A stretch of DNA of 64,000 nt from Trichoplax adhaerens (GCF_000150275.1 NW_002060968.1:105797-169796); one strand, 5' to 3'. Shown: positions 14,681-60,085, counted from the first letter of the stretch. Numbers and translations: made by a program. Notes: a model not told the origin generated them from the letters alone.

Positions 14681-16689
14681 TCAAATTGCCACTATATCGA
14701 TTTTACATTCAGGTGGAATATATTTCATTTTCTTTTTGTCTTGAATGAAAATTTTTCCTTGGCTGAAACAAACCAAGGCAGGATAGTTTTTTTGATGACG
14801 TGTTTTATAATTTATCAACACGAAAGAATCGTCGGAGTCGACAAATTCGAAATTATAGCTGCATATGAATGTGGGGGGAATTTTCTTTTCGATGTGACGA
14901 ATTTTTTCTTTTAGAGCCGTCGAGTTGTAATGGTTAGGGATTGCCTTGGCGCTGTCTCTCAGTAGTAAATCCTGCAACATAACAGATAAAATGCATTATT
15001 GTCATTAGCTTCTTTCAACCTGTAAAATTCTAGTAAAAAAGCCATGTTAAGTACGAATATAACTATACTTGTAGATGTGAATATTCCTATCATTCAGCAA
15101 GTAAATCCTACTTAGTTTAATAATTAAGAATTTTAACATAGACTAGCCATTAATCCTCAAATCACGGATTGATAAAGTTGTCAATAGCAAGTTCATGTTC
15201 ATCTCTATCACTAGTTGATTTTCTCTACCAACCATCGCTATCAGAAATAAATTTACTGGCATATCTTATGCTATGCTTACCACAAATACCAAATCGTAAT
15301 AATATGGATTTTGTCGCTGCTGAAGGCATAATAAAGAAGATGGCTTTCTATCAACCATATGCAATATCCAAATAATGCTTATAGCGCTACGTAGCATCGT
15401 GAAATGTCCTAGAATAATATGATAGGAATTTAAAAGCATAAAATCGATAAGAATCAGTCTTCTATTCGTATTGTATTGCACGATTGATATGCTCTAGCTT
15501 AGGTATTGACTGAATCATGATCAAAGAATAAACGTAAAGTATGCTAGCGTAGACTTTTCATCGAAGCAACAGTAGTTCATAATACGATTATGCAGAATCA
15601 AGTATAAAAATACAGACTACAATCGTGGAGCACCTCTCCATATTCCCGAGCTCTAATCTTAATTTCCTGATGATACCATAATTGAAGCGCTTTTACTCAT
15701 TTATGCTAGTAGAAATGATCAACTTACCAATATCAGGATTGAGAGAAACTTGAGGTAGATTTGTATCTGATTCACCTAAATAACCAGCCCTATTTCCAAT
15801 AACGAATGCTTGATCACTTTTACTTATATAGCCATCCATACTCCGGTACGCGAATTCATTATTGCGTAGAAGATCTGTAAAGATAAATATTTCATTGATC
15901 TTACTTGGCCATTAGCCAAAACTATTCCGATTAGCGGCGCATTTATATCAATTATTGTTAATACAATTAAGCAAGCATGAGATCAAGTAAAAGGAAGTAA
16001 TGTCATGGAAATAAAGGAGTAAAGTGAAAATAGATACCGTATCTTTAATTAATAACAGCCAAAATAGAGTGCTTATTATACACACAGCTTTCTATTAAAA
16101 GATTCATGAGCTACTTACGATTTTTATGAAGATGAGAACGCATTTTTTCTTCAATTTGCCGTGGATGCACCGTTGTAAACTTCCTGTTAAAGTGCTGATA
16201 TTTCAATACTTTATAAACACTATGATAGTTAAACGATTTTAGGGAAAAATGTATTTGAAATTTCTTTGTAACAATATAATCCGCTCAATAGTGTAAATTA
16301 AAACACCAATGCAAATAATAGAACTAATGGGCCTGATAATTTTATACTCCTACAAGGTGCTAAAATGCAATGGAACGATTTCGGCAGTAGTTCTGTTTAA
16401 AATTCTTTCTTAGCGATGTAATTCTCTCAATAACGCCAACAAAAACTAATCTAACGATCAGATTTATGAGCTTTACAGTTATCGCCTCATTGCTTTATAT
16501 AAGCTACTTAATATCTCAGTTTTAATTCCACTCTTGCTGTCTTCTCTATAAGGAAACGAAACTGTTGTTGTGTACCTAAAATGAAATAATTTATTAAGCG
16601 TATCCAAAAATTCATTCAATTATCACAATATTAGTTTAAACAATTGATGTTTACCGATGAGTTATCATCACTAATGTCTTCAGTAACAT
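14681..16689 (-). CDS. FGF/IL-1-like beta-trefoil family copy 1: exons 16183-16119, 15874-15728, 15408-15281, 14971-14681. Candidate first exon 16689-16655 (221 aa total); alternative ATG at 16143 gives 196 aa
   Basis: Spliced product ..KFTTVHPRQIEEKMRSHLHKN|HLLRNNEFAYRSMDGYISKSDQAFVIGNRAGYLGESDTNLPQVSLNPDI|GHFTMLRSAISIIWILHMVDRKPSSLLCLQQRQNPYYYDLVFV|DLLLRDS...FICSYNFEFVDSDDSFVLINYKTRHQKNYPALVCFSQGKIFIQDKKKMKYIPPECKIDIVAI*. Canonical splice sites; core exons 147/128/291 nt. 5' end uncertain. Confidence 0.8.
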
Positions 16690-19600
16690 ATAGATCCATA
16701 TAAAGAATAAGCAACCCTTCCAAACCAGTCCGGAATAAAAAAATATCTTGCTTTCTCATGGCCAATAAATTTCAAAACCGAAATGGCATTTATTCTCTAT
16801 GACAAAATAAAAAATGGTTCCAAGTTTGACTTCTTCCAAATTTGTCACATCTTTCACAACATGCAACGGAATGCAAACTATTTTGATGCCTATCTTGTAT
16901 CCCGGCTTATAAGTCAACAATGTTTAAATGTATTAGTATACAGAATACGTGGCGCTACTTCTCAAGTCATTTAAATAATTAATTCAATTTTAAAAATTGG
17001 GTCAATTCAACAAAAAAAGACGCCGGCAGTTTCATGACTTAATTAGCAATAGCAGATAATCTCTTGTTCACCCATTTTACTTAGCGTGGTTTTAAATTTG
17101 AGTTGACAACACAAACTTCAACTATAGTCATTTAAATAACTTCTACAAATTTAATATTCCATTACTGTCCGTATACTTGTAGCATAACAGGCAATAATGC
17201 AATACGTCTACGTGTTAGATTGTTTGTAAATTTAAAATTACGAAACTAATTCAGTTTCGGTTAAAGCCAAGTGAATTAGTTTAGATACCAAATTCGTAGG
17301 CAGCTCAAAGATTAGATCGTATGATTGTAATTAATCACTTGATCGGTGATGTTCTCATGCATTTTAAAGGAGAGCCTTAAGCGATACTCATATACTTTTA
17401 GATCTAAGAATGTACGATAGCTAAGATTTTTTATTAGTATAAAATTCCGTTTGCATATGCTCTGTAGCTGCTTGCGTAGATACCCGTAACATATAGATAG
17501 AAGATATAAATGCCAATGACTTTTAAAATAACAAGAATTCTAGATTTGACTCTAGTGAAGACTGGTGCTAGTGTTTAACCGACGTTGGAAACAGTTTCTT
17601 CGAGTATGTTACTATAGTAAAGCAACAATGGCATAGTTGTAATATATAATGAACTCATATTAAATGTTTTACAAAGAATTTAATAACAATAGAATTTAAA
17701 AGTGCTTACATCTAAAAAAAGTAAACAAAAGATTAATTGCGTCGCAGGAAAAAAATCATGCATTACCTACAAAAAATCTATGTTAAAAAAGAACTGAGGT
17801 AACAATTAATTGTAATAGGATCTAAAATTTAATTGGTAGCGAAATAAATAACTGACACTTGTGCTAATAAGATTATAAATAAGAAATCTATGTCTAAAGA
17901 TAGCGGTATCAAACTTGATCATATCTTTAATAAGATTTAAACCTGCATTTAAGTGACAATAAAATAAATAAAAAATTATCATGTCAGCAAAAATTAAACA
18001 GATAGAATTTACGTTCATGGCTTTGACTTCAGAATTGTAATCAAACTTTTACCCTATCTATAATAAGATTTAAAGCTACATCCAGCTAAGAATAAAAAAA
18101 CAAATCATAACCATTTTCCGACAAAAATTATAAATAAGGAATCTATATTTTTGAACTATGATGTCAAAATTTTCATATCATAGCCACAAGATAAATGCTA
18201 TTTGTTTAACCCTATTAAGTTGCGTTTCATCAGTTATTATACAATTAAATTTACCTGTATTCAACTTCTATAGTTAAAGTGATCACAAACACAAATACAG
18301 CTCCTTCTCTCGAAAATGGTTCTATGAACGTTACCCTACCTAAAAAAGTAAAATATGAAATTTATGATAAAATTACGTTACGTACATCATCATCCAAGTT
18401 CTAGAACACTAGAAAACAAATAGATCACGCTAGTACATAACTTATCTAATCAGGCCCAGTACTTCCTGTACCTAAATTGATATAAAACGGCCTAAAAACA
18501 ATTTTTGGAGATGTTATCCAAAAATTTTTTCTTACTTTACTATTAGTAGATAGCATAGTTAAAGTAGCTGCAAATTTTGAAAGCATGCAGGAAAAACACT
18601 AATCACTTTCTTCTTATACTGCATTGCCTATTTAGCTGTATAAACAAAAACATTATCTAATCATGGTGTATGTATTACAGATTGCATCATTCATTGCTTC
18701 GTTCGTTTATAATCTATCATGATCAACTTAATAGTTGATAATTATCTAGAAGTTTAGGTACATGGTCTTGCGCATCCAGTTATACTTTGCAATTCTAGAC
18801 ATATCCTGCAATCCTGTTTTCCTTCTATTAATAGATACTACTGTTACAATAGATCTTGCTTTGGCAGCTTGCTGAGAACCACTAGCTTTTTTCTGTTACT
18901 ACAGTAACTATCAAGTTATATAGTCAACAACATTATCCGATCATAGTTTGTATCTCAGATAGGTTTCATCGTTCATTACTTCATTCGTTTGCAATTCATC
19001 ATGATCAACTTAATAGTTTGCAATTAAGAACTACATGATCTTGATTGCTTAGCTATAGGTTGCAAACAGATATATAAATATAAATCATTGCATGTATACT
19101 GTTTACCTATTATCTGCTCTCTGCAAAATATGCATAATTTATAATATCCAATCAGAATTAACTTTATCATCATGCTTAAAATTAACGATAAGCAAATGCC
19201 GTGATATAGTGCGAAATATATCTTAAACTTCCTTTATTTTACTGTAAACGGATAATAAGGTTAAAGCAGCTCCGTCCTTATCATCTTGCTAATAAAATAC
19301 TAACTCTTTTCTTCTTGGACCGTAAACAAAAGAATAGACATAAAAACGTTATTAATTATTAGTTTATGTCATAAACTGTTTTACATCATTCGTTACTTGA
19401 CGTATTGGCAATTAAAAAAGACCTGCTTACAAAAAATTCACTTTAATGGCTGCCAACTGTCGATTACATTTTACAATATTGCTAACTACTTTTAGAATCT
19501 GCTTACATGGCGCTGTTTGGCAAACAAATTCAAAGATATGCTTTATTCATTTGAAATTGAATAAAAAATAGCAATATCTGTAGTTTCTAAATAGAATATT

Positions 19601-19859
19601 CTCAATACTTATACGCAGTCTAATAATATACTGTGCCATACTGTATGAATGCAAAACGGATTGGCAGCAAAATATAAAATATATTAATTAAGCTGATGAG
19701 AGCGAATGATGAAGGTTTCAGCAATCAAGCATTTCTGTTACTATATAATCCTAACTTTTTTCCTTTTGTACCCTTTTCAACTTGAAAATTATATATTAAA
19801 AAGGAAACTTAATTATGGGATTTATTTTACCCGTCCGAATAACTGCACTGCCAATAATG

Positions 19860-20799: not shown

Positions 20800-22560
20800 C
20801 TAAGTATTCACCAAAAGTATTCTGCATTCAGAAAGAATGGAGTTATATACGTATTTTATTCCATCAAGCTTTATAATCATTCTACTATTAAAACAGACTG
20901 CTTTAAATTGATATTGGTTAGGTCCATGAATCCTGCAAATACTCTAGACCAAGATATTTGCCGATTCGGGCAAATAGTAATCGCATTCAAAGCTACAGAA
21001 GTATTTGGATTCAATTTCCTCTTCGATACGTTGTATTTTATTACATAGTTGATTCTCGATTATATTTACGCTATGATTCAGATACAAATCCTATATAGTA
21101 CAAAATGATGACATTTAATTATTAACCCTAACAAATTTTAAAATCGCTAAGTTTAGTAAAACCTCATCAAATGTTATACAAGCACAGTATATTAATTTTT
21201 GTCAATTTTTTTAGGAATTCAGCATGTGGCACGCTAGCGAAGAAATATCAACATCGCGTTGCAATCCATAATCAAATTAAGGTTTAATAAATTTCCTAGT
21301 AGCAAGCTCAGCTTTACTGTCAATCATTAATGGATTCCTATCTAGTTAGCCAAATTATTAATAATCTTGTTATCAAAGAGAATGAAATTCTTACCTCAAA
21401 TACCATCTCATAATGAAAATGATCTTGACGCTGATGGAGGCATAAAAAGAAGATGGTCGTTTCCCAACCACTTGCAATATACAAAAGAGTGTCATATTGC
21501 TAAGTATCAATATAAAATGCTCTGCAGAAAGGATATGGGAATGATGAAGGATGAAATGGTTAGCTCTTACTCCTATTGATGAATGGTAATGACTAACTTA
21601 CTTGTATCAGGCACTTGAGTTAGATTGGCATCGATTCTACCTACGAAACCATTATTACTTCCAATATTTATCGCTTGAATAGTTCTTTGAATATATCCAT
21701 CACTACCGCGATAAGCAAATATTTCTCCAATTATGTCATCTATAACATACGAGATGGAACATTAACGTATACTGTTTATTCCTGACCATAAACCCAAAAA
21801 TTAGAAACCAATTTATTCAATCCCAATCCTTTCTATGCAGTCGCTGTTCTTATCAAAGTCAATTCTTGACCGATACTATATAACTGTCCATGCTAACTTA
21901 CAAATTATCTGGATATCAAGTATGAACTCGCTACCATAGTGATATATTGTGCTAATGATGAGATTAAAGCGGGAGAGAAAAAAGATCGAATAAAAAATAA
22001 TTTAAGTCCTCCTACAGAGATGAAGCAGTAAAGGAGCAAGGTAATAAAGAATAAATATTAAAGATCGATTTTAAGCTGATCAAGTGCTCATTGAAAAGAT
22101 TAAAGAGCAACTTACTATTCCTAACAGTATCATATTCTCCATTATGCCAAGGATATACAGTAATTTTCTTACTACTTGAATACTGATATCTTAATCACTT
22201 TAATTGTGAAAGCAGTAATTTTTATTTAATATCGTGATTATGTAACTCGCTCAGGGACGACAATTAAAGCTAACGGAATTATCAGCCCTTGTGAGTCTTA
22301 TAGTTTCTCTCGGCAGTTCTAGAAAATATTGCTTTATATTCCATGCCTATCTCCTCTCTTATTGTCTTATTTAATAGAAATAAAACTGTTTCAATACAGC
22401 AAATAAAGGAAAATTTATTAAAAAAGCCTTAGAGAGCTGATTAAATAATGGCTTATACTTAGAATAAGTCGTCACAACATTCTACTGTAATATATAATCA
22501 CTCCTAATATGTTTACCAAGATGCTACCTTAGCAGTCTTCTTTTCTATTATGTCAATCAT
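20800..22560 (-). pseudogene. FGF/IL-1-like family copy 2 (closest to copy 1), disrupted: exons 22560-22517 (candidate), 22171-22116, 21739-21602, 21521-21395, 21090-20800
   Basis: Exon DIIGEIFAYRGSDGYIQRTIQAINIGSNNGFVGRIDANLTQV aligns to copy 1. The middle exon is 127 nt instead of 128 (1-nt deletion in the A-run at 21444-21448, just before LCL). In-frame TAG at 20946-20944 in a 291-nt last exon. Confidence 0.85.
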
Positions 22561-24338: not shown

Positions 24339-27300
24339 TTAATTATCGTACTTTGTGACAGGTAAGATTGAAAAGATGCAGTCTCGTGGAATGTAGTCAC
24401 TAGGTCTTTTGAATAAAGTTGCAGTACCTTGCGCAAAGAAGAAAATGGTATCATTCGGGTGATAATCGCCATCAACAAGTTGGAATGCCATTTGCGGCTC
24501 CCCCATAAAAGGCTTAAGCATGAGCATAGAAAATTTCCAGATGACATCATAGCTTGTTAATGTCTTTATCCTATCCACTATTCGTGTGATTATATCTCTA
24601 GTATCGTCTTCTTCTATGGCAGGAACACTCTAAATATGTGAAGAAGATTTAGCTAATACTATCAACTGCCTATTTGTAAGTACTAATGAGACTGAAAATA
24701 TCCATCGCACGCAAGTACAAAAGATAAAAATGAAGCCAAACTGTAAGCTTGGATAGAAATGAGTGGCTTCAATACCTTTACTTAACAAGACAATACAAAA
24801 TAATTTGGATAGAAATAATAAGATAATAATTGATTTAAATTAGCCCTTAGTAAATAACTTTTAGGGTTAAGTGTAATCATGCGTAGACCAGGGAAAAAGG
24901 GAATAGGGTAAAATAATGTCTTAAATCATGGTGTTATATTAATAAAATTAGTATTAGGATTTATGATTATTTTTTCTCGTTCTTGTATGGACGACTATTT
25001 ACTCTTTCGAATTCGAATACTACCGGTAAAGAAAAATATTGTGTGTATTGAGCTAAATTTGGAAAATATTGTAAGCCGTGATAACATATTATGCAGAAAA
25101 CAGTTCTATTCTAATGATGCTCAAATCTTAATAGAATGGACTTCACTATTTCATATAACTTTTTCGACAGGGAAACACTCTTTAATGTATAATTGGCATT
25201 CCTTTTGACGAGAGTACAGGTTCGGAAAGTTAAGAATTATGAGTATGTTCGTAAAATGCTATGCTGATAAAAATTATAATCTACAATGGTATTACAATTT
25301 CTTATAATTTTTCTGTACGAAAGAATTCGGTATTACACCAGAATCAATCTGATCGGGACTGGAAAGTTTTAAAGAATAAAGAAGCCTTTATGATGACGGT
25401 TAATTTTTAGAATTCTCTCTCAAGATTTTCTTATTTTAATAAGTACTATAGCTTTAAAAATAACTTAATTTGGTTTAATTATAGTAGGTTTAACTTAATA
25501 TCGTAACACATTGTTAACCTGACTACTTTATTCAGGTTAGAGCGTAAGAATATTCTGTAGCATAATTTTGATAAGAGTATCACGATGTTAGATTGTAATT
25601 TATGTGATATAATTAGTTAGTATAATACTCCTGCTTTAATTATGATAAAAACTAGTAGCCAATTTTGATTACAAAGTGCAGTAAAGATAATGTTACTTCG
25701 TTATTGAATACTGTGTAAACCCAAATATTTCGATCTGGGTTCTAATTTAAGATTGTTAGTGAGCCTTAGTCTTTTTTGTATATGTCTTAGACCGTAGGGA
25801 AGTAAAATTTGTAGATTTAGTAATTTTGAGAATCTAGGGTACAATTTATCTGATCATATGTGTTTAATGGCTAATTTTATTTAAAATAATTTAGAATAAT
25901 AATTTGATAGCCTAATGCCACCAACTGCCCTAAATTCGTGAGTAAATTGTATTTTTCGTTGATAGTTTGACTTGTTAAGGCAGCAATTCTGCCCTTATTG
26001 TAATTTTTAATTGGTTTTTATAAGTTGTTTGCTAAATTTATAAATTATTGGTGGTTTCTCCTAATTTTCCTTGAGTTAGAATTAAAAATTTGTTAGATTT
26101 ACTTGAACTTTTGCGTCCATTCTTACTCTTAGATGAAACTACTATTTAACTCTGAAAAAGAATGAAATCTTATAAAGCAACTCAAGTACAGTACATTTAA
26201 TTGCAAGTAGCTTATCGATAGGGGAAAGTTCATTGCAACAAAAATGATACAGTATGTTATAAAGTGTAAAATCACAGAATATTTAAAATAATCTTGCTAA
26301 CTGCGCTACAGTCTCGTATTAAAAGTGCTTATTACAATTATTTATGCAGATTAATGTTTGAATGTAATACTCATTCTTACGTAATTTATTGCAAGATCAT
26401 GTATAAAAGACTGGAAATTACTTGCATTCTTATAGTATATTTATCATTTATTTCTTTAACTTACTAAGTAGGCAACTTCGTAGTTTTTGCTTCTATGGTG
26501 TCGAACTAAGCACAATACAGCTTCTGGTCTATTCTTAGTTATAGAAAGAAAAGCAGTTTTCTCTTCATCCATAGGTCGCATTTCAAGATGTACTAGAAAT
26601 GGAAGGAAGTAACTTTAATAATTTCAAAAATATCGGAAATAAGGAATACCGTAATCTACAATTCTTTAAACATAAGCCTGTCGTAAATTTATCTAATAAT
26701 ACACTATCATTTTCCCTACATTAAATTCTTATACATGATAAAATTATAAGATCAAACATTATTCATAGCCGGATAGGAAGGAATTATCTATAATTCTAAA
26801 AACTTTAAGTCTGTCATAACTATCTTATATTAAATTTTCCTGCGGTATGTTCATTTTCGTTATAAATTATGTCATCGTACGTTAATGCCTGGATGAGACG
26901 AATTATTTTTAATTTTATCACTTTTAAGCTCTTAGTGTGTAGTGGTTTTACGAATACAAGCCTTATATTAAATTAATAATGACAGAAGCAAATGCGAGAT
27001 CAAATATTAGTGTTAAATTAACTTGCAGTAAAGTTAGTTTTTACCGCATGGCATAAAATGGCAAGATACTGCTGCTTACAACTCTACAAATTCATTAGCT
27101 TAAAATCCTTTTTTTTACTAAGTGTTGTTTAGGATTTTATTCATTTATTTAGAAACAAATTATTATGATATATATTTAGCTCGTAATAATTGCACTTGAC
27201 GGTATGCTAGCCTGCCATTTGCCAAACATCATGGCTGAAGTAGTAAATCGAATACCCGTGATCGGTATCAGTAGTGAAGTACTACGGCTCATAACTCTGC

Positions 27301-28214
27301 AACTTCGTTACCTTATAATTATTATTTTGACTTTATGTTAACTTGTAAGAAAGTTAACTGTTATCTTATGTAAGAAATGGTGAAAAGCTACTGTTTACAA
27401 GTCTTTAAATTTACTAGTCTATAAATATTATTCTGATTATAGGTTAACTTGTAGTAAAATTAATGGTTATGTCATAGAATAATGAAATGCTGCTGTCTAG
27501 ATTATCTTAATGATGGATAACAGTTTTTATAAATGGAAAGGCTGCATCGCTAATAGAATATTAGTTCCATATAGCATAAAATCAAAATAATTTGCTTGCA
27601 GATAACTAGTTAAAAAGCTATACCATCGCTAAGGTATATATATATGTTACGGCGTAACATATATACTCCTTAGCTGTAACTGGCATAGTTTAAGTTATAA
27701 TGACATAGATATTGGGTAGAATACCAACATCGAAAAGAAAGCTTAATCATACCAGCTTCAGGATCCAATTTATCTATTATGCTTGAAAAAACGGCTTCAA
27801 AACCAATACTGGATCCATATGGTATAATTTCTGTACTGCGAATCAAATATTGATCATTCCACAGTAACATAACTGTTCGGGCACTAGATGCCTCAGAAAC
27901 TTTCGCATGTTCATCTGCTAAAAGCCGAAATCAGAAGATGAATCTTAACAATTCCATCTTAGAATCGAAAGTATCTATAAGTAATTTCATTACTGCCATG
28001 GATACGGGTAATAATACTAGTGTAAATTTCGTCATATAACTAATTGAATTTCCCATCTAACTAGCCAATTTATATTTTTAAGACAACAAAATCAGTGTTT
28101 GGAATTTGAGTTCTATCTCACTAATCCTACTCGAATATAGATTTTTTAAGCATAAATTGCTGGTTGGAAAATTTTGTAACAGTTCCTAGTAAGTCTCGTC
28201 AATTTACCCGACAT
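24339..28214 (-). CDS. FGF/IL-1-like family copy 3, 196 aa: exons 28214-28208, 27917-27753, 26592-26465, 24629-24339
   Basis: MS|ADEHAKVSEASSARTVMLLWNDQYLIRSTEIIPYGSSIGFEAVFSSIIDKLDPEA|VHLEMRPMDEEKTAFLSITKNRPEAVLCLVRHHRSKNYEVAYL|SVPAIEEDD...VIWKFSMLML...IFFFAQGTATLFKRPSDYIPRDCIFSILPVTKYDN*. Exons 7/165/128/291 nt, intron phases 1,1,0. An upstream in-frame stop precedes the ATG. Confidence 0.88.
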
Positions 28215-32370: not shown

Positions 32371-32717
32371 ATTCTATAAAATCTCGATTTCAGGAATTTT
32401 GCAAGGGAAGAGATTTTTTAATTGGTGTAGCTTGTGCTTTTTATTCTATCAAATATACCATTTAAAGATTTCTTATCATAACACGAAACATGGACTACGC
32501 GTCTATTTGAAATCTGAAAGCACCAGTAAAATTAGGAATTAGTATCTTATGTGCTACGTCATGTTCTTCTTCTCTAGCTTATCTTCTGGACTATATCTAA
32601 AAGTAACAATTAGCTGCATTATAAATTGTTGTTTAGGCAGCAAAAGGATCGATCTTAGCCAATCCGGTATAATTTATCCTTACCTACGTAACTGTATCTC
32701 TTTAATGAATCAACTTG

Positions 32718-34836
32718 TTACTTTACAGCTGGTAAGATCGAAAAGATGCTGTCTCGTGGAATGTAGTTTCTAGGTCTTTTGAACAAAGCTGCAGTCCCAT
32801 GAGCAAAGAAGAAAATGGTATCATTAGGGTAATAAGCGCGATCAACGACTTGAAATGCCATTTGCTGTTCTCCCATATAGGGCTCAAGCATGAGCATGGA
32901 AAATTTCCAAATGACATCATGGTCTGTCAGTGACTTTATCGCATCCTCCATTCGTGTGCTTATGTCTCTGGTATCGTCTTCTTCAATGATTGGAACACTC
33001 TAAATAGACGAAAGAGAATTGAGCTGATATTAGCAGCAAGCTATTTTTAATCCTAAAGACTCTAAAAATACTCAATACGTCAATTTTTGGCATGATAAAA
33101 TTTAATATGACATTGTGAATTAGTCCGATTAAGAATAGGGTATCGAAAGATTTTAAAGTATAAATAATGTAGCTAAAATTATTATTTTAGTATGGTAATG
33201 ACTTGGATTTCATAAAGTATGGGCATTACAACTTTACGTAGCTTGCAAACAGCTGGAAATCATTATTATTTAAGTAATCCAATAGAATGAAGGTATAAAG
33301 TTATGAAACTTCGAAATAATCTAGCTAATGGTCCAAAAAATTATATTTCCGCAATGAACTTTGCGATTTTAAGCAAGTTTACATGTATAAAAATCTTCAT
33401 TCTCACGTAAGTAATGTGTCATCTAGGAAATGATTAGAAATTTATTGGATTCCAATAAAACTCTATCAGCTATTTTTGAATCTTACTAGGAATATAACTT
33501 CATAATTTTTGCTTTTGTGGTGTCGAATTAAGCACAGTGCAGCCTCTGGCCTATTCTTAGTTAGAGAGAGGAAAGCGACTTTTTCTTTATCCATGGGTCG
33601 CATTTGGAAATGAACTAGAAAGGAAAATTTTGTTCATTCGCAATATATGAAAATAAGAGATTTATCTACGATTATACAAAACATAGGCCTGTCACAATTA
33701 CATCTAATGCTTGGAAATTCCAGTAGTATGACTACTTTCATGATACAATTTTACGATTGAATATTAATGTCAAGATAAATAGGAATTATTTAATTTTCTT
33801 TAATATTGATTAAGCTTATAGAGTGCAGTTACCAGAAAAAAGCATTTTAATCATACCAATAATCGCGATAAAAATTGTATTATCGAATCTAGTGCCCATA
33901 AAGATAGGAATGAGCTACAATGTGACAGTTATAGAATGTTATCATTACACTTGACGATATAATAGGCAGTAGTTTGGTAATAATCATGGTAAAAACTGCA
34001 AGATTAAGTGGCAGGGGCTTTAAAAATTACTCGGGTAGTAATTATTTACAACTTTCCAATTTTAGCTTGCAACTATTCTGCTTGACGATAGGTTAGCATG
34101 TAGCAGAATTAATGGTTGAGGTAAAAATGAATAGAAAACCGCTGCTTAAATTTTTCTAATTACACCAACGGCAATCACTAATGGTAAGGTTGAAATATTG
34201 ATGTAATATTAATTCCACTTAGTATTAAATAAAAAATTACTATTTAGAGATAACTAGTTCAAAAAGATTATAGCGTTCTTGAAAGATGTCATACCCTTTA
34301 ATAGCAACTATCAAAGTCTCAATCATCACGTAAAGATGATGAATGAGTAGCAACATCTAAATAGAGCTAAATCATACCAGCTTCAGGATCCACTTTCTCT
34401 AAAATACTAGAAAATGTGACTTCAAAACCAGCATTGGATCCATAATTCGACATTTGTCTGGTACGATTCACGTATTGATCGTTCCATAGCAGCATAACTG
34501 TTCGGCTAGCAGCTGCTTCAGAAGCTTTCGAACTTTTATCTCCTATAAGTCAAGATTAAATTAATCAATTTTGACAGCTATAACATAGAATTGAAGGTAT
34601 TTATAGTGCAATTTTATTGCAGTCATGGAGACGATTGATGGTTCTCTTGCAAATTTTTCATATAATTTAAACTGTCCATCGAACAAATCATGTATAATTG
34701 CACGATATCGAAATGAACGTTTGAATCTGAGCTTTATCTTATTAACTCTATGCAAATATAGCGGTCTTAGGCTCAGTTTTGAAAATAAAATTTTGCAGCA
34801 TATATATGGAGTAAAATCCATTAACTTACCTGACAT
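32718..34836 (-). CDS. FGF/IL-1-like family copy 4 (recent paralogue of copy 3), 193 aa: exons 34836-34830, 34542-34378, 33614-33487, 32999-32718
   Basis: MS|GDKSSKASEAAASRTVMLLWNDQYVNRTRQMSNYGSNAGFEVTFSSILEKVDPEA|VHFQMRPMDKEKVAFLSLTKNRPEAALCLIRHHKSKNYEVIFL|SVPIIEEDD...VIWKFSMLML...YIPRDSIFSILPAVK*. Exons 7/165/128/282 nt, open frame. Confidence 0.88.
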
Positions 34837-37507
34837 GTTGGACTGTAATAAAGGATTGCTCAAGCACAGACTTGAAATGTTAAAGGGTTAAAGTATTCTT
34901 CAGCTTGTAGGAGAATTTAAAATTTTAACCTAAAAGAAAAGATAGAATTGTTCCTCATATTCTTAAACTAAGTAAGCAAAGTCTTTAGCTTTAGATTAGG
35001 TGCAGCTAGACAAATTTTGCAGATTGTATAAAAATCAAACCCACTTGATAAAAGAAGCAGCTTAAATATCTATTTATCTTACCACAATATGGCAACAGGC
35101 TGTAATTCAAAGTTTACTATGGTAAACGTGAAATGAAATCTAGATTTTTCTTGACCAAGTAGAACGCTTTTGCTTGCTTGTCTGCAAGTAATGGCAAAAT
35201 TTTTTGCGTCTTTACTATTTATATAGATCTAAATACTGAAGCTATTGCTTCAGTTGCGATTACTTATTGCCGCTAATCTATCTATGATATTCATCATGGC
35301 TTTTGTATTTCCTATCAATTAGTCATCGTACGAACATCTCTGCATTTTCACTTCTCTTGGAAAGAGTATTTATCCTTCATAAGTAAAGGTCAATATTACT
35401 CGACATTATAATATTCAAAAGCTGCAGTAATTTGATCTTGAATCATTGCCGAAGAAAGCGGTAATTTAAACGGTTTTAGTTTATTCCATGATTTTTAACA
35501 GGTCAAGCGGTAGAATATCTAATTATAGTCAATTTCCACAACTTGACATTATTATAATTATCTTCACTAATCTACATTTAATATATCGATCTTCGAGATT
35601 CCAATTATTTAAATTTAAAATTTATGTAATGGAAACTCAGTAAAATCTCATGTAGTAAATGAATGGTGCATAAAGTGTCGATATTACACAATCGAAACCT
35701 TCACCGCTGTATTAGTTTTAATCCACTGATATAATCAAGCTCAACAGATCTTTGGATAATATAAAAATCAATAAAGTTATCTACTTATTCTTCTAGATGC
35801 TGTTGTCAACATCGACTATTACTCAATAGAATTCGTCGGTATTCCAATCACTAATGGATAGATAGGGTCCTACTAGATATATTTTCATGGCGATAGAGAA
35901 CATAAACAATTTAACTACTGGCATCAATTAAGCGCTACATGTTACCCCATTTTACTAAATGTTATCAAAGTCAAATTATTCCAAGTTTACTAATAATACA
36001 GGATAACGTATCTATTATGTCCAGTTAGTATTATTATTCGATATTGGAGAAAAAGTTACGCTTACAAAATAGAGTAGGAAGCTAGATGGGAATTGCTTTA
36101 ATTCTAATATTTTATGAAACTGATGATATGTCACCATGACTATAAGTAGTTGAGCACCTAGAGAAATAGACATTGTCTAACTTAATAATTCAATTCATAC
36201 GTTCATTAAGAATTATTTAATATCAAAATCATGAAATAACAATGTTATCTAATGAGAGAAATGTTTAAATGGATTTATAACAAAACAGTTTAACGGTCTA
36301 TTGTAAATGTCTTCAATGTCTGACAATGCCGTTTATTTCAATGCCAAAGATTATAAATTAAAAACCTAATTATGATGCCTGAAACGTCCAGAATATTCCA
36401 AGGTAATAGGTCCACTAATTGCCTGGACAATCATAATAACAGAATTTCCAGCGTAAAGTTGAAGACATCCAGCCTTAACTATAGCTTAAATTTAGATACA
36501 TAACTCATATTTAATGACATATGATAAATTTTCAATGAAAGCTATACAACTAGTAATAACGGAGCAACTTGGAGTAGAAGGTAGCAAAAACATATGTAGT
36601 CAAGAAATGGCTATCTTAAATAACATGTAGGGTATAACGCCGAATGTTGATGGATAGAATTATCACAATACAATTCTTAATTATCTAATGGTGGATTAAA
36701 GCCGAATGCACTAATCCACGCCCAAGCTCTTTCTTAAAAATACGTTCAACGCCCAATGCTTACGGAAGATAAGAGCTAGCAAACTATAGATAGACTTTTA
36801 TTTGTATATATTGTTAAATATAAATGGTAAAAATATCTTTAGCCAGCTTACATGTATCAATTACTTTCTAATGGTGTAGTAAGGGGCGATTTTTGACACC
36901 AATATACCGTATGTTATTTTCTACTTGAATCTGTGAGGCATAAATAATAACTGTTATCTTATTCAACTAGTTTTATAGTCCGTAGCTTGATCACAGCCAT
37001 AAAGGTATATACAGTATAGCTCTTAAAATAGGATCTCTTTTAATGGCATTGATAGCTATCTGAGTTAGTTAGTCTTGTTTATGCTACATTTCATATTCAT
37101 AATTTTGTAAATGTATGAGCAATTTAATAGACGTTAACTTATGATTGAGAATCTACACCTACAAGATGTGAGATACGGTAAATCGATCAGAATCAGTCTC
37201 TGCTGTCTCAAAGTTGCAGAAGTTTCTGAGCTTTTATCGTTAGTATACAAGGCACATGAATAGAATAATGTTCTGGTAGTTTAGTTAACAAATATTTCAC
37301 ATAAAAAAACTTCGTAGCTTGTTATTGTTCATTTTATTTACTATGATAATTGTTACCATAAAGTATATTGCTGTATTGTTTTATTAGCTCTATTTCATGC
37401 CAAGATCCCTGTAGTTTTAAGTCAGATCAAGATTTCAATACATTCATATGAACTTTATTCTGAATCGATTTTCCTTTCTATCCTTTACTTATTAGGCAAG
37501 GGTGTTT

Positions 37508-40500
37508 TTATGTAGGAGCGTAGACACCACAAAACTCAGTCGATATTCGGAATATTATTGTCAATAGTATCAACAAAGGTTACGGTTTTATCGAGATTGA
37601 AAACGGCAATTTGCAGTTTTGTTTTGTTAGCAGTGCCCTTAATAGGTACATATTGATAAAGAATATCCAACCGTTGCCAACGGGTTTGTGTGAAAAAGCC
37701 TGATATCTACCTTGTAAATGATATCTATATGATAATAATTGTTCAACTTTTCGGCTTCCAATTGAAAAGTATCGATAGATGAATAAAGAGAATTCAGTTT
37801 CTAAATAAAGGCATTAAATTTTAGTGAGCTTCAAACTAATGGCGTTATTATTCTAAAGAAAAAGATCTATGTTAATATAAATGGGGAAATATCACTAGAT
37901 AGGCATTAAAATATTCTTACTAGTGCTTAACATTATGGAGAACAGGCACAACGATTTGAATACAAGTACGTAACAACTTATGGCTTTCTATACTAGCTGT
38001 TAAATAGTGCTATGCATTGCAATGGCGCTCTTTCCACGTGCTATTTAATTAATCACGATTATTGGAGTATGGATGGCGGCAAATTAGAAACGAAAGTAAT
38101 TTATAATTTCATGAAGAAAAGTGTTCACTTTCCATTTAAATGTAAAATATTTACAGACTTTAAGTCTAGCATATTAGGCTCCAAAATATCATCCACTGCT
38201 AGCAAGCAAATCCATATAGAAAAGGCTTAAATTCGTATAAAATTGCATACTATCATGCAATTTAAGAGTTTTGGTAACTTCTAACAACACTTGCAACATC
38301 TTTACTAATAAATTTGTATATAAATTCAAAATGAACACTGCCAATGACATCAGAATGATTAAAATCATATTAAATTTTACGATCATGGAATAAATACTAA
38401 TAGCTTATACATTAAAGATTAGGAAATAGTTATAATATGCTCTAATTCCGTTTAGTTCTACATTCCTTAGAATTCTACCTTTGAATTACATCGCTACTGG
38501 TATAATATCTAGACAAGAAGTAGAATGTTATTTCTGAGGTAAATTTATTACTTACCAATATTAAGAACTTGTAGGTATCAGTACATTTTAGTCTATTTAG
38601 ACACAGTAGATACGACTTTTCAGATGAGGTCATGAAAAGTCCAAATGTACTATCGGTTAAAATTAAGCAAAAATGGGCTAAAAAAAAGAAAAAACATCGA
38701 AAGAGAGGGTATTAGTCCTAACTGAAAATTGTTTCGCTGCCAACAAATACCGATTCTGTTCTATAGATTTCTATGCAATTTGTACTTTATTGCAGTGTAG
38801 GCAGGACAATCGGATGGTATTATCTTATACGAGTATATAGCATATATTAATAATGGCATAGGCTAGACTGGACTCTTGGTTACTACTGTTCGATTTAGAC
38901 TATGCGGCAAATTTATCAGAACATTAGATGTCTTAATAAGATCGAAGTTACATGACTAAATATGTCACAATTATTACTTCTTTCACTAGGCTCTTTTTGG
39001 AGAGAAATATTTGATAGGCGGAGATGGTTACATAATTATACTCGCTGGTGTCAAGTCATACTCTTCATCAACTCAAAGCATTATGGAGTATAAGCTTTAA
39101 TAGAGTTTAGGAATTGCATCTCCTCTTGCCGCCTGTTTTAAGCTAAAAATAGCCCTGACTTCCACAACGATTAAGAGAGTAATTTCTATCTTAAGCTACT
39201 GTTATTTAAAAATGCCAGTCAATTGGTATTCCAAGGCAGACTTTTGAGACAAAGTCTTACTCAAAGGTCAGATAGAACTTTGAATAAAACAAAATTTTTA
39301 TGTTAGCGTGGAAAAATTTATCGATCACATGTCAATACAATACTTTCCACCACAGTTGATTGACACACTACCAACATGGTAGACGTTAAGATTGTCAAAT
39401 ATATTGATAAATTTCCTTATTATGATAAAACATAAGAATGATAGATATATTTGATTACTGATTGTGATCAAGCAAACATTAGTCATGCAGAGTACAATAT
39501 GATTGGGATTTGAAATAATCTTATTTTATAAATAGCAAGATCTAAAGCAGCGGTAAGAAATTCCCACAACCTCTTGATAATTGGACAATACTCATGCTTC
39601 ATAAGTTTAAGCTCAAAAGAGTTCCACGATTATTCGATACTAGGATGGTCAATAATATAAAATATGATGGACTTTAATTTTCGTATTCTTTACCTTATGT
39701 ACCATTCAAACTAGGTAATATGTGCCTGCAAGACAGTGTAATATTGTATTCTAAGTTGATGATATATTTAGTAATGTCAACCGTAGATGTTGCGTTCAGC
39801 ATGTGATAGATATTGTCGTTAGAGGCTTAAGTATTAAATACAGCTATCTTAGTAACTGTAATCCTTTTCAAGAGGAGCACTACGAAGCTCACACTAGAGC
39901 TTCACATGAAAGGTGTAAACTATCCTGTATTTGAGATGCTAATACTGAAGTGTGTAGTAAGTAAGGTGCTAAGACTTTAAATACGGAAAAGTATATAAGC
40001 GAGTAGTTTAGTATAGTAAGATAGTTCTTTCTCGTTAGAGGTCCTCCGCTAATCGATTACGTTGTATCTTCGTAAACGAGGTTTTGTTCGATAAATCTTA
40101 ATTTTCGAAAGTTTTGAAGATTCTTGATCTATCAACCTCACAGTGCCTGTTCTAAGCTTATACGAAGCAATCTAATACTTCTATTGGATGCCAGTAATAC
40201 ATATGCAATCAATACTATAAGATGCTTTGATTCGCAGACCCTTTACATTATATTATATAGTACAAAAATTGTGGTAGCAATCATCTATTCCTATACTTAA
40301 CAGAAAAAATGAATACAATCTTGTTATGCTTTGAGCACACTTAGTGATGAATAACTATAAGACCCTTTAATAAGTGAACATAGTGTTCTTAACAATGAAC
40401 AATCCTAAATTAAAATTACTTTAGCTTGATCTAGTTGTAGAATTCATTAATAGAATTATTTAGTAGCTGAACTGGGTAACAATACTGATAATTATCTTCC

Positions 40501-43707: not shown

Positions 43708-45151
43708 TTAGTCCATGACCAATCTTATATCACTTTCAGGTGGTGTAAAACCCATCACACGATCTACCAATCGAACTTTTCCATCAGCATCGAAGGCTAC
43801 CAATTTGATAGTTTTGTCACTGCTACTTTCGTTGCTATTACTTTCCTTACTAGCGGCTATCAATTGGACTATAGTCGATCGTGCGTCTTTATTTTTACAA
43901 GTATTGTAAGATCGGTAAAATAACCAGACAATCTTATCTGACTCTTTCTTATTCCATTCTTTAAATATTTTCGTGATTTCCGATATATCTCTGTCTATTT
44001 TCTATAGCATGTAAGAATTATTTTAAATCAGAAAATAACAGTAGGTAATGATGGAAATACTTTACTGCGGTACTTATTCGTAGATTATTATTATCATGGC
44101 TAAATAATACTAAAGTCAAACAACTATGAAATACTTTAAATGCATTTCATTTTTTTATGATACTATTCTATTAAACTTTACCGAACCCTGTTACATTCAA
44201 TCTGTGATAGAAAAATTTATTAAGATTAGCTGATGTCTTATTATAAATGAAAAAACCACGAAAGGATCTGATTCTAAATATCAAATTAATCATATTACTT
44301 TTTCTAAATAACTTCGAAAATTTTATTACGGTATACAATCGTAAGGTTATACAGAAAACTAAAATTCAGTCATTTTTTAGACATACACCTCGTACTGTGT
44401 TTTAAGTTGATTCATAAAATACAGTAAATATAGCTAGCAATCAACATTGTAAGCATAAGTGAACTGCTTAAGTATGTATATTGCACCATTGTGCAGGATT
44501 GCCTAACAGAGGTATTTCCATCACAGACTTACCACAAAGATCGGATCATAACTACTCGTATTTTCTTTGATTTTAATCAAGCATAGCAGATATTCAGGAT
44601 CAGATTCAAGGATGATACGTGAATTAGCAATATTGACTTGTTGAAATACGAATTCAGCTATAGTAAATTGATTATCAATGAAAATATATTTTTAAATTGG
44701 TTTTAAAGTTTACAATAAAAATAATTTGACCAATTAAATGGAATAATTGATCGATCTAAGAAGAGACATTTACCATGGTCGGGATTTTCATCAACCTCAT
44801 CTAATCCGTCAGCAAAAGAAGCAGAACAGGCAGTAAGAGGATTGAGATCATACAATTCATCACTTCGTTCGAAGTAATGTCCATCTACTTCAAAGTATGC
44901 TTCTTTCGGGACAGTGACCAATTCTAGAGTAGAATATCAAATTGAGTTTGTTAGTGTCAAATTAGATGTTCTATTTCTGTTCCACGATTGTTTTTAATAG
45001 TAGCCAATTAATTCTACGTAAATAAATGCTGACAACTTTAAACCATTAACAAATCAATTATTTACTCGTGTCGCCATAAATCACATATTAATACTTTTTG
45101 TGGACTGAAAAATTAGCAAATAACCAAATCACCTGTAGAAGTAGCTTCCAT
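43708..45151 (-). CDS. FGF/IL-1-like family copy 6, 195 aa: exons 45151-45133, 44923-44774, 44657-44533, 44001-43708
   Basis: MEATST|ELVTVPKEAYFEVDGHYFERSDELYDLNPLTACSASFADGLDEVDENPDH|AEFVFQQVNIANSRIILESDPEYLLCLIKIKENTSSYDPIFV|KIDRDISEITKIFKEWNKKESDKIVWLFYRSYN...KLVAFDADGKVRLVDRVMGFTPPESDIRLVMD*. Exons 19/150/125/294 nt, phases 1,1,0. Confidence 0.88.
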
Positions 45152-50320: not shown

Positions 50321-51373
50321 TTATCGTACGACTAATCTTAGGTCACTTTCAGCCGGCATAAAATCTATAATACGATTTACCAATCGAACTTTCCCATCAG
50401 TATCAAAGGACACTAATTTAGTTCTATTTTGTCCAATAGTTAAGTGGACTATCGTCGATCGTGAATCCAGATCATAGTATTGTAGATTGAATAACCAGAT
50501 AATAGTCTCCGGATCTTTCTTATTCCATTTTTTAAATATTTTTGTAATATTCTCAATATCTCTATCTATTTCCTATAACATTCACGAATCAATGCAAATC
50601 AGAAAATGGCAATAGATAGTAGCAGAAGTACTTTGCTGCTTGTACTGTATTTTAACTTCATCAATAAAATGCTGTAAACACAAGTATAGCTAGAAATGAA
50701 TATTGTAGGCAAGTAGAACTTCCTACGTATACTTATTATTCAGTATTTTCATCACAAACTTACCACAAAGATTGCATCATATTTACTCTCTTCAATTTTT
50801 TTTAGGCATAGCAGAAGTTTAGGTTCAGATTGTAGAATGATGCGTGAGTAAGTATTATCCACTAATTTAAATTCGAATTCAGCTATAATTAATTGATAAT
50901 AAATGAAAGCACATATTTTAAATTGATTGTACAGTTTATAATGATAAAATTTGAGGAATTAAATTGAATAATCGATCGATGTAAGAATCGATATTTTACC
51001 AGGAGAGGAAAGACTATTAACTTCCTCCAGTCCGTTAACACGAGTAGAATAATATCCTTTTAAGCACCCCAGATTATATGGTTTATTGCTCCTTATTAAG
51101 TAACTGGAATTATGTCCTGTTTCAATTAGCATTTTTTTACAAGAGCCTATTGAATCTAGAATAGGATACCAAACAGAGTTTATTAGTATCGGATTAGCGC
51201 TGTCCTATTTTCATTTCAATACGGAGACATTTAAATCTACACAAATACCGGTAATGTTGAGCATTACCAAACAAGAATGCACTTTTACAGCTATATATTA
51301 TATAACAGGTTGATACATTTTTGTAAATTAGAAATTAGCCATTAAACAGTTTACCAGCAGAGATAAGCTTCAT
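50321..51373 (-). CDS. FGF/IL-1-like family copy 7 (paralogue of copy 6), 181 aa: exons 51373-51355, 51155-51000, 50882-50764, 50572-50321
   Basis: MKLISA|DSIGSCKKMLIETGHNSSYLIRSNKPYNLGCLKGYYSTRVNGLEEVNSLSSP|AEFEFKLVDNTYSRIILQSEPKLLLCLKKIEESKYDAIFV|EIDRDIENITKIFKKWNKKDPETIIWLFNLQYYDLDSRSTIVHLTIGQNRTKLVSFDTDGKVRLVNRIIDFMPAESDLRLVVR*. Exons 19/156/119/252 nt. Confidence 0.88.
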
Positions 51374-56287: not shown

Positions 56288-56410
56288 TGAACGCTCGAGA
56301 AAGTTTCATCGGAACAGTAAAAGATGCAGTTTTTTATCTATAGAAATAATCTGGAGTTAGAAAATAGTTATGTAGAATCATTCCTTATGAATTTAAAATT
56401 ATAGCCAAAC

Positions 56411-58948: not shown

Positions 58949-60085
58949 TTAAGCCGTAGATAGAAATATTGTGCTTTCGGGAGGCAAATATTTATTACGC
59001 TTCAAAGATTTGAGACAGACATTTCCGTTAGCTCTAAAGCAGACTATCTTCATTGAATCGTTGCGGCATACGAGCAGACGGATTGGAGTTAATCCATCAT
59101 GTCTTGATAAGTATTCGATATTAAATTTCCAAATTATAACAATACCATTTCGCTCTTCAATTTCACTGAACTTCTACAACAGTGAAGGCAAGACCTCGTG
59201 TATATCCTATATGACGACAGTGGAGTCAAAATAAACCACTTTACTTCTAAGCAATCTACGTATATATATATACATTGATTACAAAGTATTCCATATTGTA
59301 GAAACGTCTAATTAATCATTTCTCATCTACAAATTACTACGTAAATCCATCGATATTCGTTTTTCTTGTGACTCACTTTCCTTAAGCAAAGCAGCTGTGT
59401 AGGGACCAATTTTGAATTTACTGCTTCAATGCAATGGCTGATATTATCGTCGATACTTTTAGACGTGAATCGTACTATAAATTGAAACGGCAAATTTTTT
59501 TGAAAATTTAGGCAACGACTAATCAGCAATAATTTTAGCTTTCTACTGAAGTGCATTAGAGACCGATAGAATTTGCGGTGTGGTATACAATAGTCTACGT
59601 AGACATGCATTGATAAAATTAGAATATCAATAAATTAAATGCATGATGTGCTAGTGTGAGATAAATGTTTCTTCATATATTTATTATGATAATGTGAATA
59701 AAGTAAGTGAATATTATAATATTAAGCAATGTAGTACATTCTGGACACTTGCGCTTCCATAAATCTCGAAAAGCTAAAATTACTAAAAGTTTTAAAGTGG
59801 AGTATGTTACAATCCACCTAAGGGATAAATATTTCGCTGAAATACTATAACTGCCTCTTAATTAAACAAGAATAAAACGTTCAATCTGAGATAGTTACCA
59901 GTAGTTGTTTCTTCACCGTATTTATATATTCCCGCAAATGTGCAACCATGAGCTGTCAGTGATCCAAGGTCATGCATATAGTAATTATCACACCATGTCA
60001 AGTAACTTCTTAACCGTTGACTGTAAATGTAACAGCCGCAGAAGTCTGATGTAGATGATCTATCAAGTGTATCTCTATTACACAT
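58949..60085 (-). CDS. FGF/IL-1-like family copy 8, ~182 aa: exons 60085-59899, 59474-59338, 59173-58949
   Basis: MCNRDTLDRSSTSDFCGCYIYSQRLRSYLTWCDNYYMHDLGSLTAHGCTFAGIYKYGEETTT|VRFTSKSIDDNISHCIEAVNSKLVPTQLLCLRKVSHKKNEYRWIYV|KFSEIEERNGIVIIWKFNIEYLSRHDGLTPIRLLVCRNDSMKIVCFRANGNVCLKSLKRNKYLPPESTIFLSTA*. DLxxLTAxxxxFA is shared with copy 6. Intact only if the acceptor at 59174-59175 is used. Confidence 0.75.

Follow-up and report, generated by a model that had tools for sequence, protein, structure and literature searches.

Genes at the locus

The window, a stretch of 64,000 nucleotides from Trichoplax adhaerens, contains eight trefoil genes (here c1 to c8), all on the minus strand, of which six are apparently intact and two broken. 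They belong to a family of at least 13 members, namely 12 in a cluster flanked by a Gemin5 homologue and one unlinked copy. The family is Trichoplax-specific and tandemly expanded, and its proteins, about 180-200 residues long, are predicted 12-strand beta-trefoils. No signal peptide is present, the N-termini being leaderless as read directly from the database proteins P0001-P0003. Copy c4 corresponds to TRIADDRAFT_61700; most copies are unannotated, so that the family is missing from current placozoan gene sets. The exons are as follows.

14681..14971, minus: c1 last exon including stop, helix and strands 8-12
15281..15408, minus: c1 penultimate exon, strands 4-7, 128 nt, phase 1/0; matches database protein P0004
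15728..15874, minus: c1 preceding exon, strands 1-3, 147 nt, phase 1-1; joined frame open
21395..21521, minus: c2 penultimate exon, pseudogene, 127 nt, 1-nt deletion relative to c1
21602..21739, minus: c2 preceding exon, 138 nt, phase 1-1
24339..24629, minus: c3 last exon including stop
26465..26592, minus: c3 penultimate exon, 128 nt, phase 1/0; spliced CDS equals P0002
27753..27917, minus: c3 preceding exon, 165 nt, phase 1-1
28208..28214, minus: c3 exon 1, coding part, ATG plus 4 nt, phase-1 donor
32684..32999, minus: c4 last exon and 3'UTR, stop at 32718-32720; RNA contigs
33487..33614, minus: c4 (TRIADDRAFT_61700) penultimate exon, 128 nt, phase 1/0; RNA contigs from three studies
34378..34542, minus: c4 preceding exon, 165 nt, phase 1-1; RNA contigs
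34830..34927, minus: c4 exon 1, 5'UTR and the first 7 coding nt from the ATG at 34836, phase-1 donor
35081..35176, minus: c4, further upstream, a non-coding exon of the 5'UTR; seen in the X7 and X8 contigs
37539..37800, minus: c5 putative last exon, frameshifted, truncated before strand 12
38556..38677, minus: c5 penultimate exon, 122 nt, phase 1/0; no other c5 exon is clearly recognisable
43708..44001, minus: c6 last exon including stop
44533..44657, minus: c6 penultimate exon, 125 nt, phase 1/0
44774..44923, minus: c6 preceding exon, 150 nt, phase 1-1; joined frame open
50321..50572, minus: c7 last exon including stop
50764..50882, minus: c7 penultimate exon, 119 nt, phase 1/0
51000..51155, minus: c7 preceding exon, 156 nt, phase 1-1; joined frame open
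58949..59173, minus: c8 last exon including stop
59338..59474, minus: c8 penultimate exon, 137 nt, phase 1/0
59899..60085, minus: c8 first coding exon, strands 1-3, ATG at 60085, phase-1 donor

Exon sizes, phases and expression

From c1 to c8, the penultimate exons measure 128, 127 (frameshifted), 128, 128, 122, 125, 119 and 137 nt, and in every copy a pyrimidine-rich stretch leads into the AG acceptor and the donor reads GTAAG or GTAAT. In all intact copies their length is 2 modulo 3 and the terminal codon is complete, which means phase 1 on entry and phase 0 on exit. The initial annotation had described penultimate exons of 119-137 nt with these phases, and the pattern was re-derived at all eight coordinates, as was the pseudogene status of c2, which is frameshifted by its 1-nt deletion. 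A preceding exon of 138-165 nt in phase 1-1, proposed for copies 1-7, can be found in six of the seven (c1, 147 nt; c2, 138; c3, 165; c4, 165; c6, 150; c7, 156), while no credible phase 1-1 exon lies upstream of the c5 penultimate exon. Since its last exon is frameshifted and truncated, c5 looks like a probable second pseudogene. The preceding exon of c8 appears, as described, to be fused to the initiation codon, the in-frame ATG at 60085 running to the phase-1 donor at 59899; if the weak acceptor at 60072 were used instead, the exon would be 174 nt long and in phase 1-1.

The same exon and phase pattern is found in four further copies past the window end, and again in the unlinked paralogue, whose two exons on contig C1414 measure 147 and 140 nt. 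Across the family the preceding exon ranges from 138 to 171 nt, and in all copies the middle (penultimate) exon is 119-143 nt long. As the copies are paralogues, their eight phase fingerprints amount to a single evolutionary observation.

The c4 splice junctions (32999 to 33487, 33614 to 34378 and 34541/2 to 34829/30), and with them the expression of this copy, are confirmed by RNA-derived contigs of three independent studies, and the predicted exons of c4 and c3 translate exactly to P0001 and P0002, respectively. In the data that showed c4 splicing, the putative last exon of c5 has no RNA contig match. Joined exon frames are open in c1, c3, c4, c6, c7, c9, c11 and c12, and the family is under purifying selection, with dN/dS between paralogues of 0.29-0.58.

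Predicted fold and position of the introns

AlphaFold2 models of c9 (pLDDT 78.8, pTM 0.73) and c4 (pLDDT 63.9) agree on a 12-strand beta-trefoil with identical strand order, in which strand 1 begins at about residue 15. Strands 1-3 come from exon 2, strands 4-7 from exon 3, and strands 8-12, preceded by a helix, from exon 4. In c9, the phase-1 intron splits codon 57 (strand 4 starting at about 58) and the phase-0 intron follows residue 96 (strand 7 spanning 90-97); in c4, codon 58 is split, with strand 4 at 60-66, and the second intron follows residue 100, with strand 7 at 94-101. In both models the phase-1 intron thus lies 1-2 residues ahead of strand 4, and the phase-0 one where strand 7 ends; strands 4 and 5, which adjoin the phase-1 intron, are the lowest-confidence part of both models (pLDDT 44-70).

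In human IL1B, a phase-1 intron interrupts the codon for mature residue 40, where strand 4 begins, and a phase-0 intron comes after residue 83, where strand 7 ends, the middle exon being 131 nt long. In human FGF2, the introns interrupt codon 60 (phase 1) and follow codon 94 (phase 0), again where strand 4 begins and where strand 7 ends; the FGF middle exon is about 104 nt. The Trichoplax introns were mapped by strand order on the predicted models, against the layouts of IL-1beta and FGF2. At the level of strand order the outcome is favourable, the introns falling at strands equivalent to those of IL-1 and probably of FGF. The earlier claim that the intron fingerprint gives sequence-independent support for homology with FGF and IL-1 is partly supported, in strand order and phases.

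Sequence, profile and structure searches

With HMMER, an exhaustive search through 1.8 billion representatives returned nothing beyond the gene itself, and word-indexed searches with profiles returned Trichoplax proteins only. The family proteins have no match in Pfam, whether to IL1 (PF00340, at E up to 10) or to FGF (PF00167), and the family profile has none among PDB sequences. Searched against the genome, the Pfam IL1 and FGF models gave no exon-wise match, the IL1 search being run without a positive control. Structure searches give ties across all trefoil superfamilies. IL-18 and IL-33 are among the top ties, and near-full-length VIA alignments are obtained to IL-18, IL-33 and IL-1alpha, in a fold common to many other superfamilies. 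FGF-1-derived Symfoil designs and FGF12 are also among the top Foldseek and VIA matches, and the IL-1s are not singled out by Foldseek. When the exons are compared with one another, hhalign detects no internal sequence repeat (probability below 1 percent).

Comparison with the IL-1 and FGF families

IL-1beta genes have intron phases II, 0, I, I, 0, and their last three exons carry all 12 strands (PMC4880838). From cnidarians to humans, the two central trefoil introns of IL-1 genes keep their phasing, and IL-1-type genes have been traced to cnidarians partly by this means (Fontenla-Iglesias et al., 2026; PMC13736523). In that study, no IL-1-type genes were found in sponges or ctenophores, placozoans are unmentioned, and a subset of the IL-1anc proteins lacks a PDZ domain (PMC13736523).

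Like members of the IL-1 family, the Trichoplax proteins are leaderless 12-strand beta-trefoils, with the IL-1 strand order in the predicted models. They are encoded in the last three exons, and the last three introns have phases 1, 1, 0, so that the conserved central intron phasing is present, with the central introns placed before strand 4 and after strand 7; the genes are likewise tandemly duplicated, fast-evolving paralogues. Unlike the IL-1 family, they have no Pfam IL1 match and carry a helix of 12-15 residues between strands 7 and 8. The (F/L)ES motif is absent from the strand-9 columns of the last-exon alignments, c3 and c4 having only an aromatic residue at the comparable place. Neither a PDZ domain nor an IL-1 pro-domain precedes the trefoil, coding exon 1 being 7 nt long in c3 and c4. 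The IL-1 neighbourhood is also lacking: no GCC2, ESD or TIR-receptor gene is present on the 800-kb contig (GRIP, Esterase and TIR exon matches are on other contigs only), and no IL-1R or FGFR partner gene was found near the locus. The family further differs from the IL-1anc set in that its host phylum is absent from that study (PMC13736523).

With FGF1/2 and FHF/FGF11-14 the family shares a leaderless beta-trefoil of similar size and probably two core introns in phases 1 and 0 at the boundaries between strands 3 and 4 and between strands 7 and 8. Unlike FGFs, it has neither the Pfam FGF match nor, by eye, an FGF signature in the strand-8 region; its middle exon of 119-143 nt compares with about 104 nt in FGFs, and an additional phase-1 intron lies upstream of strand 1. 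A statement in PMC7260276, citing Bertrand (2014), gives FGFR as absent from placozoans and eumetazoan in origin.

The initial annotation regarded the family as more IL-1-like than FGF-like. Only the extra phase-1 intron, which lies in the unstructured N-terminus, and the exon sizes speak for this view, and they support it weakly; Pfam IL1, (F/L)ES, the PDZ or pro-domain and synteny do not bear it out. That the 165-nt preceding exon has the same length as in IL1B (165 nt) is probably a coincidence, because this exon ranges so widely across the family.

Origin of the gene architecture

Homology with FGF and IL-1 at the superfamily level is on balance likely. Intron positions and phases are the only clue, and a fairly specific one, to an ancestry shared with these cytokines. 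The Trichoplax genes share one architecture: a very short initial coding exon ends at a phase-1 intron; the exon of strands 1-3 follows, up to a second phase-1 intron just ahead of strand 4; next come the exon of strands 4-7 and, where strand 7 ends, a phase-0 intron; the last exon carries the helix and strands 8-12. According to this scenario, the family would have inherited the architecture from the ancestral gene that also gave rise to the FGF and IL-1 cytokine-type trefoils, and all detectable sequence similarity to FGF and IL-1 would have been lost since. More tentatively, the family may be a placozoan representative of the ancestral leaderless FGF/IL-1 lineage, either as the earliest-branching IL-1-type family or as a lineage that predates the FGF/IL-1 split.

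The alternative of coincidence or convergence, i.e., an unrelated lineage-specific trefoil (lectin-like or inhibitor-like, for example) whose introns fell between strands 3 and 4 and between strands 7 and 8 by chance, is unlikely. It would accord with the lack of any sequence, profile, motif or synteny tie to FGF or IL-1, with structural ties that extend to all trefoil superfamilies, and with paralogues that provide a single independent observation. However, both positions and both phases match; by a rough estimate, the probability that two introns would each land by chance no more than two residues from a set site, and in the set phase, is about 1e-4 to 1e-3. Simple module duplication would not be expected to leave an asymmetric 1/0 pair, and a third intron, before strand 1, is also in the IL-1beta phase.

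As a specificity control, one other family was used, the ricin-type lectin trefoil of a Trichoplax GalNAc-transferase (G000:C1412, about 626.6-627.2 kb). Like the family studied here, it is a beta-trefoil divided among three exons, of which the middle one (135 nt) is module-sized, and its first intron, here in phase 0, lies in the gap between strands 3 and 4; that gap may therefore be a favoured intron site, and intron sites in trefoils may be non-uniform, which lends coincidence some weight. In contrast, the control has phases 0/0, its second intron comes after strand 8, and it carries QxW-type motifs and a Pfam PF00652 match, so that this same-genome control (n = 1) departs from the family in both phases and in where its second intron lies. 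No QxW triplet occurs in the family alignments, and a genome-wide PF00652 scan gave matches on other contigs only.

Two narrower versions of homology can be considered. Membership of the IL-1 family proper, as a placozoan IL-1anc-type gene that lost its PDZ domain, with an IL-1 lineage predating the placozoan split, is quite unlikely. The three consecutive phases 1, 1, 0 and a trefoil carried, as for IL-1beta, by the last three exons, the leaderless and short N-terminal extension, a middle exon nearer the 131 nt of IL1B than the 104 nt of FGFs, the top structural ties with IL-18 and IL-33, and the existence of IL-1anc proteins that also lack PDZ would fit such a placement, but the motif, domain, profile and contig gene content described above do not, nor does Foldseek favour the IL-1s.

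It is improbable that the pattern is a generic one, dating from the origin of eukaryotic beta-trefoils or marking modules, and showing nothing beyond the trefoil itself. The introns do lie at symmetry-related gaps and the middle exon approximates one trefoil-sized module, as does that of the GalNAc-transferase lectin, which starts in the same gap; yet the unequal phases (1 vs 0) are at odds with exon triplication, no internal exon repeat is found, and the lectin control has equal phases and its second intron one strand later. The second narrower version, a divergent intracellular lineage of the FGF-homologous-factor type, despite two introns that probably match those of FGF genes, the leaderless design of FGF1/2 and FGF11-14 and the Symfoil and FGF12 matches, is highly improbable given the unmatched Pfam FGF model and strand-8 signature, a middle exon 15-39 nt longer than the 104 nt of FGFs, the extra intron before strand 1 and the reported absence of FGFR from placozoans.

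Significance

IL-1 and FGF sequences are too diverged to be compared, and their origin and mutual relatedness are an open question. With its trefoil fold, leaderless design and matching intron positions and phases, this 13-gene placozoan family offers a concrete test case for cytokine origins. As a guess, the proteins could be cytosolic, with a binding or signalling role, and either released non-classically or retained in the cell as FHF-type FGFs are; fast-diversifying paralogues would be typical, again as a guess, of defence or communication genes.

If homology holds, cytokine-type trefoils would predate their known receptors, and gene structure would become a usable character for tracing them. 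Should the family be the earliest-branching IL-1 type, it would lie in a phylum missing from the 2026 IL-1anc survey. Were it a representative of the ancestral FGF/IL-1 lineage, in either form, cytokine-type trefoils would be placed in an animal without a reported FGFR, and the three-exon 1/0 architecture would be the first sequence-independent character uniting FGFs, IL-1s and a family from an animal that is neither bilaterian nor cnidarian.

Exon structure of the copies in the window

The window (G000:C1389:105797-169796) is AT-rich eukaryotic DNA (29-36% GC across most of it), and all genes of the family lie on its minus strand. Eight penultimate exons, one for each of the tandem copies c1 to c8, were found by tblastn, the best-conserved copy supplying the query exons. 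Enumeration of splice sites, in which each copy shows one acceptor/donor pair that combines a pyrimidine tract with a GTAAG-type donor, gives lengths of 128 nt in c1, c3, and c4, and of 122, 125, 119, and 137 nt in c5 to c8, respectively, while the corresponding exon of c2 measures 127 nt and carries a 1-base deletion relative to c1. Since the intact penultimate exons all have a length of 2 modulo 3 and their last codon is complete, they are entered in phase 1 and left in phase 0; the sizes and phases reported in the initial annotation are thus reproduced, with c2 frameshifted. A preceding exon of phase 1-1 had been ascribed to copies 1 to 7 and was found in six of them, namely c1 to c4, c6, and c7 (147, 138, 165, 165, 150, and 156 nt, respectively); upstream of c5, the search yielded none but implausible candidates, which lie within a repeated element.

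The 122-nt exon is the only intact one at the c5 locus (window 37539-38677), the last exon being frameshifted and ending before strand 12. Because no acceptable preceding exon was found for it and its last exon is frameshifted and shortened, c5 is, like c2, a probable pseudogene, a status absent from the initial annotation. No contig over this copy was found in any of three transcript-type runs. In c8, the preceding exon had been described as joined to the ATG, and an in-frame ATG does continue into an exon homologous to the preceding exons of the other copies:

window 59899-60085, minus strand: putative first coding exon of c8, in-frame ATG at 60085

This ATG may be the start of c8; alternatively, a weak acceptor at 60072 may define a 174-nt phase 1-1 exon, which would then be preceded by a mini exon 1.

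Exon coordinates of c4 and c3 give translations exactly equal to the database proteins P0001 and P0002, the c4 protein being identical to TRIADDRAFT_61700 of Trichoplax adhaerens, and c9 and c1 match P0003 (TRIADDRAFT_61702) and P0004 (TrispH2_008885), respectively. The c4 junctions (32999 to 33487, 33614 to 34378, and 34541/2 to 34829/30) are carried by exon-only contigs from three different studies, two of these contigs adding a 5'UTR exon at 35081-35176. The runs being labelled "RNA?", the contigs were taken as transcript-derived because of their exon-only coverage and GT..AG joints. Unannotated copies were searched exon by exon, and exons were joined only for the frame check and for dN/dS.

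The gene that flanks the array on its side within the window is homologous to Gemin5:

window 300-10994, minus strand: multi-exon Gemin5 homologue, WD40 repeats in the first exon, GEMI5 TPR and GEMI5 RBS domains

Self-comparison, with periods read by eye, reveals tandem-repeat blocks between Gemin5 and c1 (12184-13570, period ~200 nt) and between c3 and c4 (31283-32374, ~110 nt). An inverted repeat pairs 39694-40199 with 55815-56320, and a palindrome (62092-62394 versus 62557-62857) surrounds an N run at 62507-62556, the same 62.1-62.8 kb element being matched by 23074-23298. These repeated elements scattered among the trefoil genes are probably transposon-derived, and one of them holds all the candidates for a c5 preceding exon that are open and of phase 1-1.

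Extent of the family

Four further copies (c9 to c12) lie directly past the window end. The same architecture is found in three of them, with exons of 150/119, 147/119, and 144/143 nt, and in c10 a preceding exon of 171 nt is the sole exon defined. A last-exon profile recovers every intact copy of the cluster, a duplicate on a small contig, and one unlinked member:

G000:C1414:11809001-11819000, locus 4527-5447, minus strand: thirteenth family member, unlinked and unannotated-looking, last exon starting at 4820

The duplicate (G000:C977:412-654) has the same score against the family profile as the last exon of c7, 109.7 bits, the contig probably reflecting a duplication in the assembly or a haplotype left unmerged. 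A family-profile match on contig C1412 (E 0.19) falls outside the neighbouring lectin gene and was rejected as noise. As the distant paralogue on C1414 (with exons of 147 nt in phase 1-1 and of 140 nt in phase 1-0) and the copies past the window end share it, the exon architecture is ancestral to the whole family. Between paralogue pairs, dN/dS amounts to 0.29-0.58, and these are therefore constrained, fast-evolving coding genes.

Predicted fold and intron positions

AlphaFold2 models, built from an alignment of the four database proteins and exon-wise translations of the other copies, reach a mean pLDDT of 78.8 and a pTM of 0.73 for c9, and a pLDDT of 63.9 and a pTM of 0.56 for c4. The two models agree in the order of their twelve strands, and in both a helix separates strand 7 from strand 8, strands 4-5 being their lowest-confidence part. 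The leading Foldseek and VIA matches are all beta-trefoils, aligned across nearly the whole model. As a prediction, the beta-trefoil fold is well supported; the superfamily is not readable from the predicted fold.

In the c9 model, strands 1 to 6 span residues 15-19, 22-33, 36-44, about 58-62, 70-75, and 79-87, and strands 7 to 12 span 90-97, 120-128, 141-150, 153-159, 164-169, and 180-185; the introns fall in codons 7 and 57 (both phase 1) and after residue 96 (phase 0). In c4, whose strands 4 and 7 are modelled at 60-66 and 94-101, two introns interrupt codons 3 and 58, and the third follows residue 100. Both models assign strands 1-3 to exon 2, strands 4-7 to exon 3, and the helix together with strands 8-12 to exon 4. 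In human IL1B, the coding exon sizes of 47, 52, 202, 165, 131, and 213 nt place the phase-1 intron at the beginning of strand 4, within the codon for mature residue 40, and the phase-0 intron where strand 7 ends, behind residue 83. The breaks in human FGF2, one inside codon 60 and one following codon 94, coincide with these strand boundaries. Compared by strand order with these vertebrate codons, the Trichoplax introns would be equivalent in position and phase to those of IL-1 and FGF genes, within 1-2 residues. The expectation that the introns fall at equivalent strands finds support in strand order in the c9 and c4 models, strands 4-5 being the part modelled with least confidence. The published intron phases of IL-1beta genes are II,0,I,I,0, and their last three exons carry the twelve strands (PMC4880838); from cnidarians through to humans, the two central trefoil introns of IL-1 genes retain their phasing (PMC13736523).

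Homology had been proposed from this fingerprint. Strand boundaries and phases agree with the proposal, but no Pfam, motif, PDZ, or synteny link accompanies them, and the balance tilts slightly toward common ancestry with FGF/IL-1 at the superfamily level. Chance or convergence is an unlikely source of the pattern: for two introns to match by chance in both site and phase, the probability is roughly estimated at 1e-4 to 1e-3, although the architecture of the paralogues counts as one evolutionary observation and the gap between strands 3 and 4 may be a favoured intron site. It is more improbable still that the architecture is one common to trefoil genes in general, as can be judged from a Trichoplax GalNAc-transferase whose ricin-type lectin domain, examined as a control, is also encoded by three exons:

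G000:C1412:622001-632000, locus 4634-5158, minus strand: lectin domain of GalNAc-transferase, exons of 96 and 135 nt plus the last, all introns phase 0

Its first intron lies in the gap between strands 3 and 4, but its phases are 0/0 and its second intron is placed behind strand 8, so that the fingerprint is not a general property of this genome's trefoils. Further PF00652 exons cluster on C1412 at 634-656 kb and 371-382 kb, and a search for fascin as a control gave no match in the genome. Origin by simple triplication of a module is argued against by the unequal phases and by hhalign, which detected no internal repeat among the three exons.

Relation to IL-1 and FGF

No relatives beyond Trichoplax H1 and H2 were found by any sequence method used. 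Exhaustive HMMER with the last exon of c4 returned only itself, and word-indexed protein searches (single protein, last-exon profile, and full profile) returned only H1/H2 proteins. No Pfam family matched, and PDB sequences and the ESM Atlas gave nothing usable, the Atlas's own model having a pLDDT of 0.35. The Pfam IL1 and FGF models had no match genome-wide, the IL1 scan being run without a positive control. TRIADDRAFT_61700, TRIADDRAFT_61702, and their H2 orthologues are named in none of the papers searched, and our literature search met no description of a cytokine-like family of trefoils in placozoans. Placozoans go unmentioned in the 2026 IL-1anc paper, according to which homologues were found in neither sponges nor ctenophores (PMC13736523).

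The view of the initial annotation that the family is more IL-1-like than FGF-like is weakly supported. The gene structure and the leaderless, predicted trefoil are shared with IL-1, but the proteins show no match to the Pfam IL1 model, no (F/L)ES motif in strand 9, and no PDZ domain or pro-domain. The GCC2/ESD/IL-1R neighbourhood was not found around the array, and Gemin5 is not among the genes reported adjacent to IL-1anc loci. The 165 nt that c3 and c4 share with IL1B exon 5 is probably coincidental, since this exon ranges from 138 to 171 nt in the family. With regard to FGF, the Pfam model match is absent and the ~104-nt exon size is not matched. The family is therefore assigned to neither IL-1 nor FGF.

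The family proteins have no signal peptides. The paralogues diverge fast under moderate constraint, and transcript contigs of c4 occur in runs of three studies. Our guess is that these proteins are synthesized in the cytosol and may have a binding or signalling role, either intracellularly or after non-classical release.
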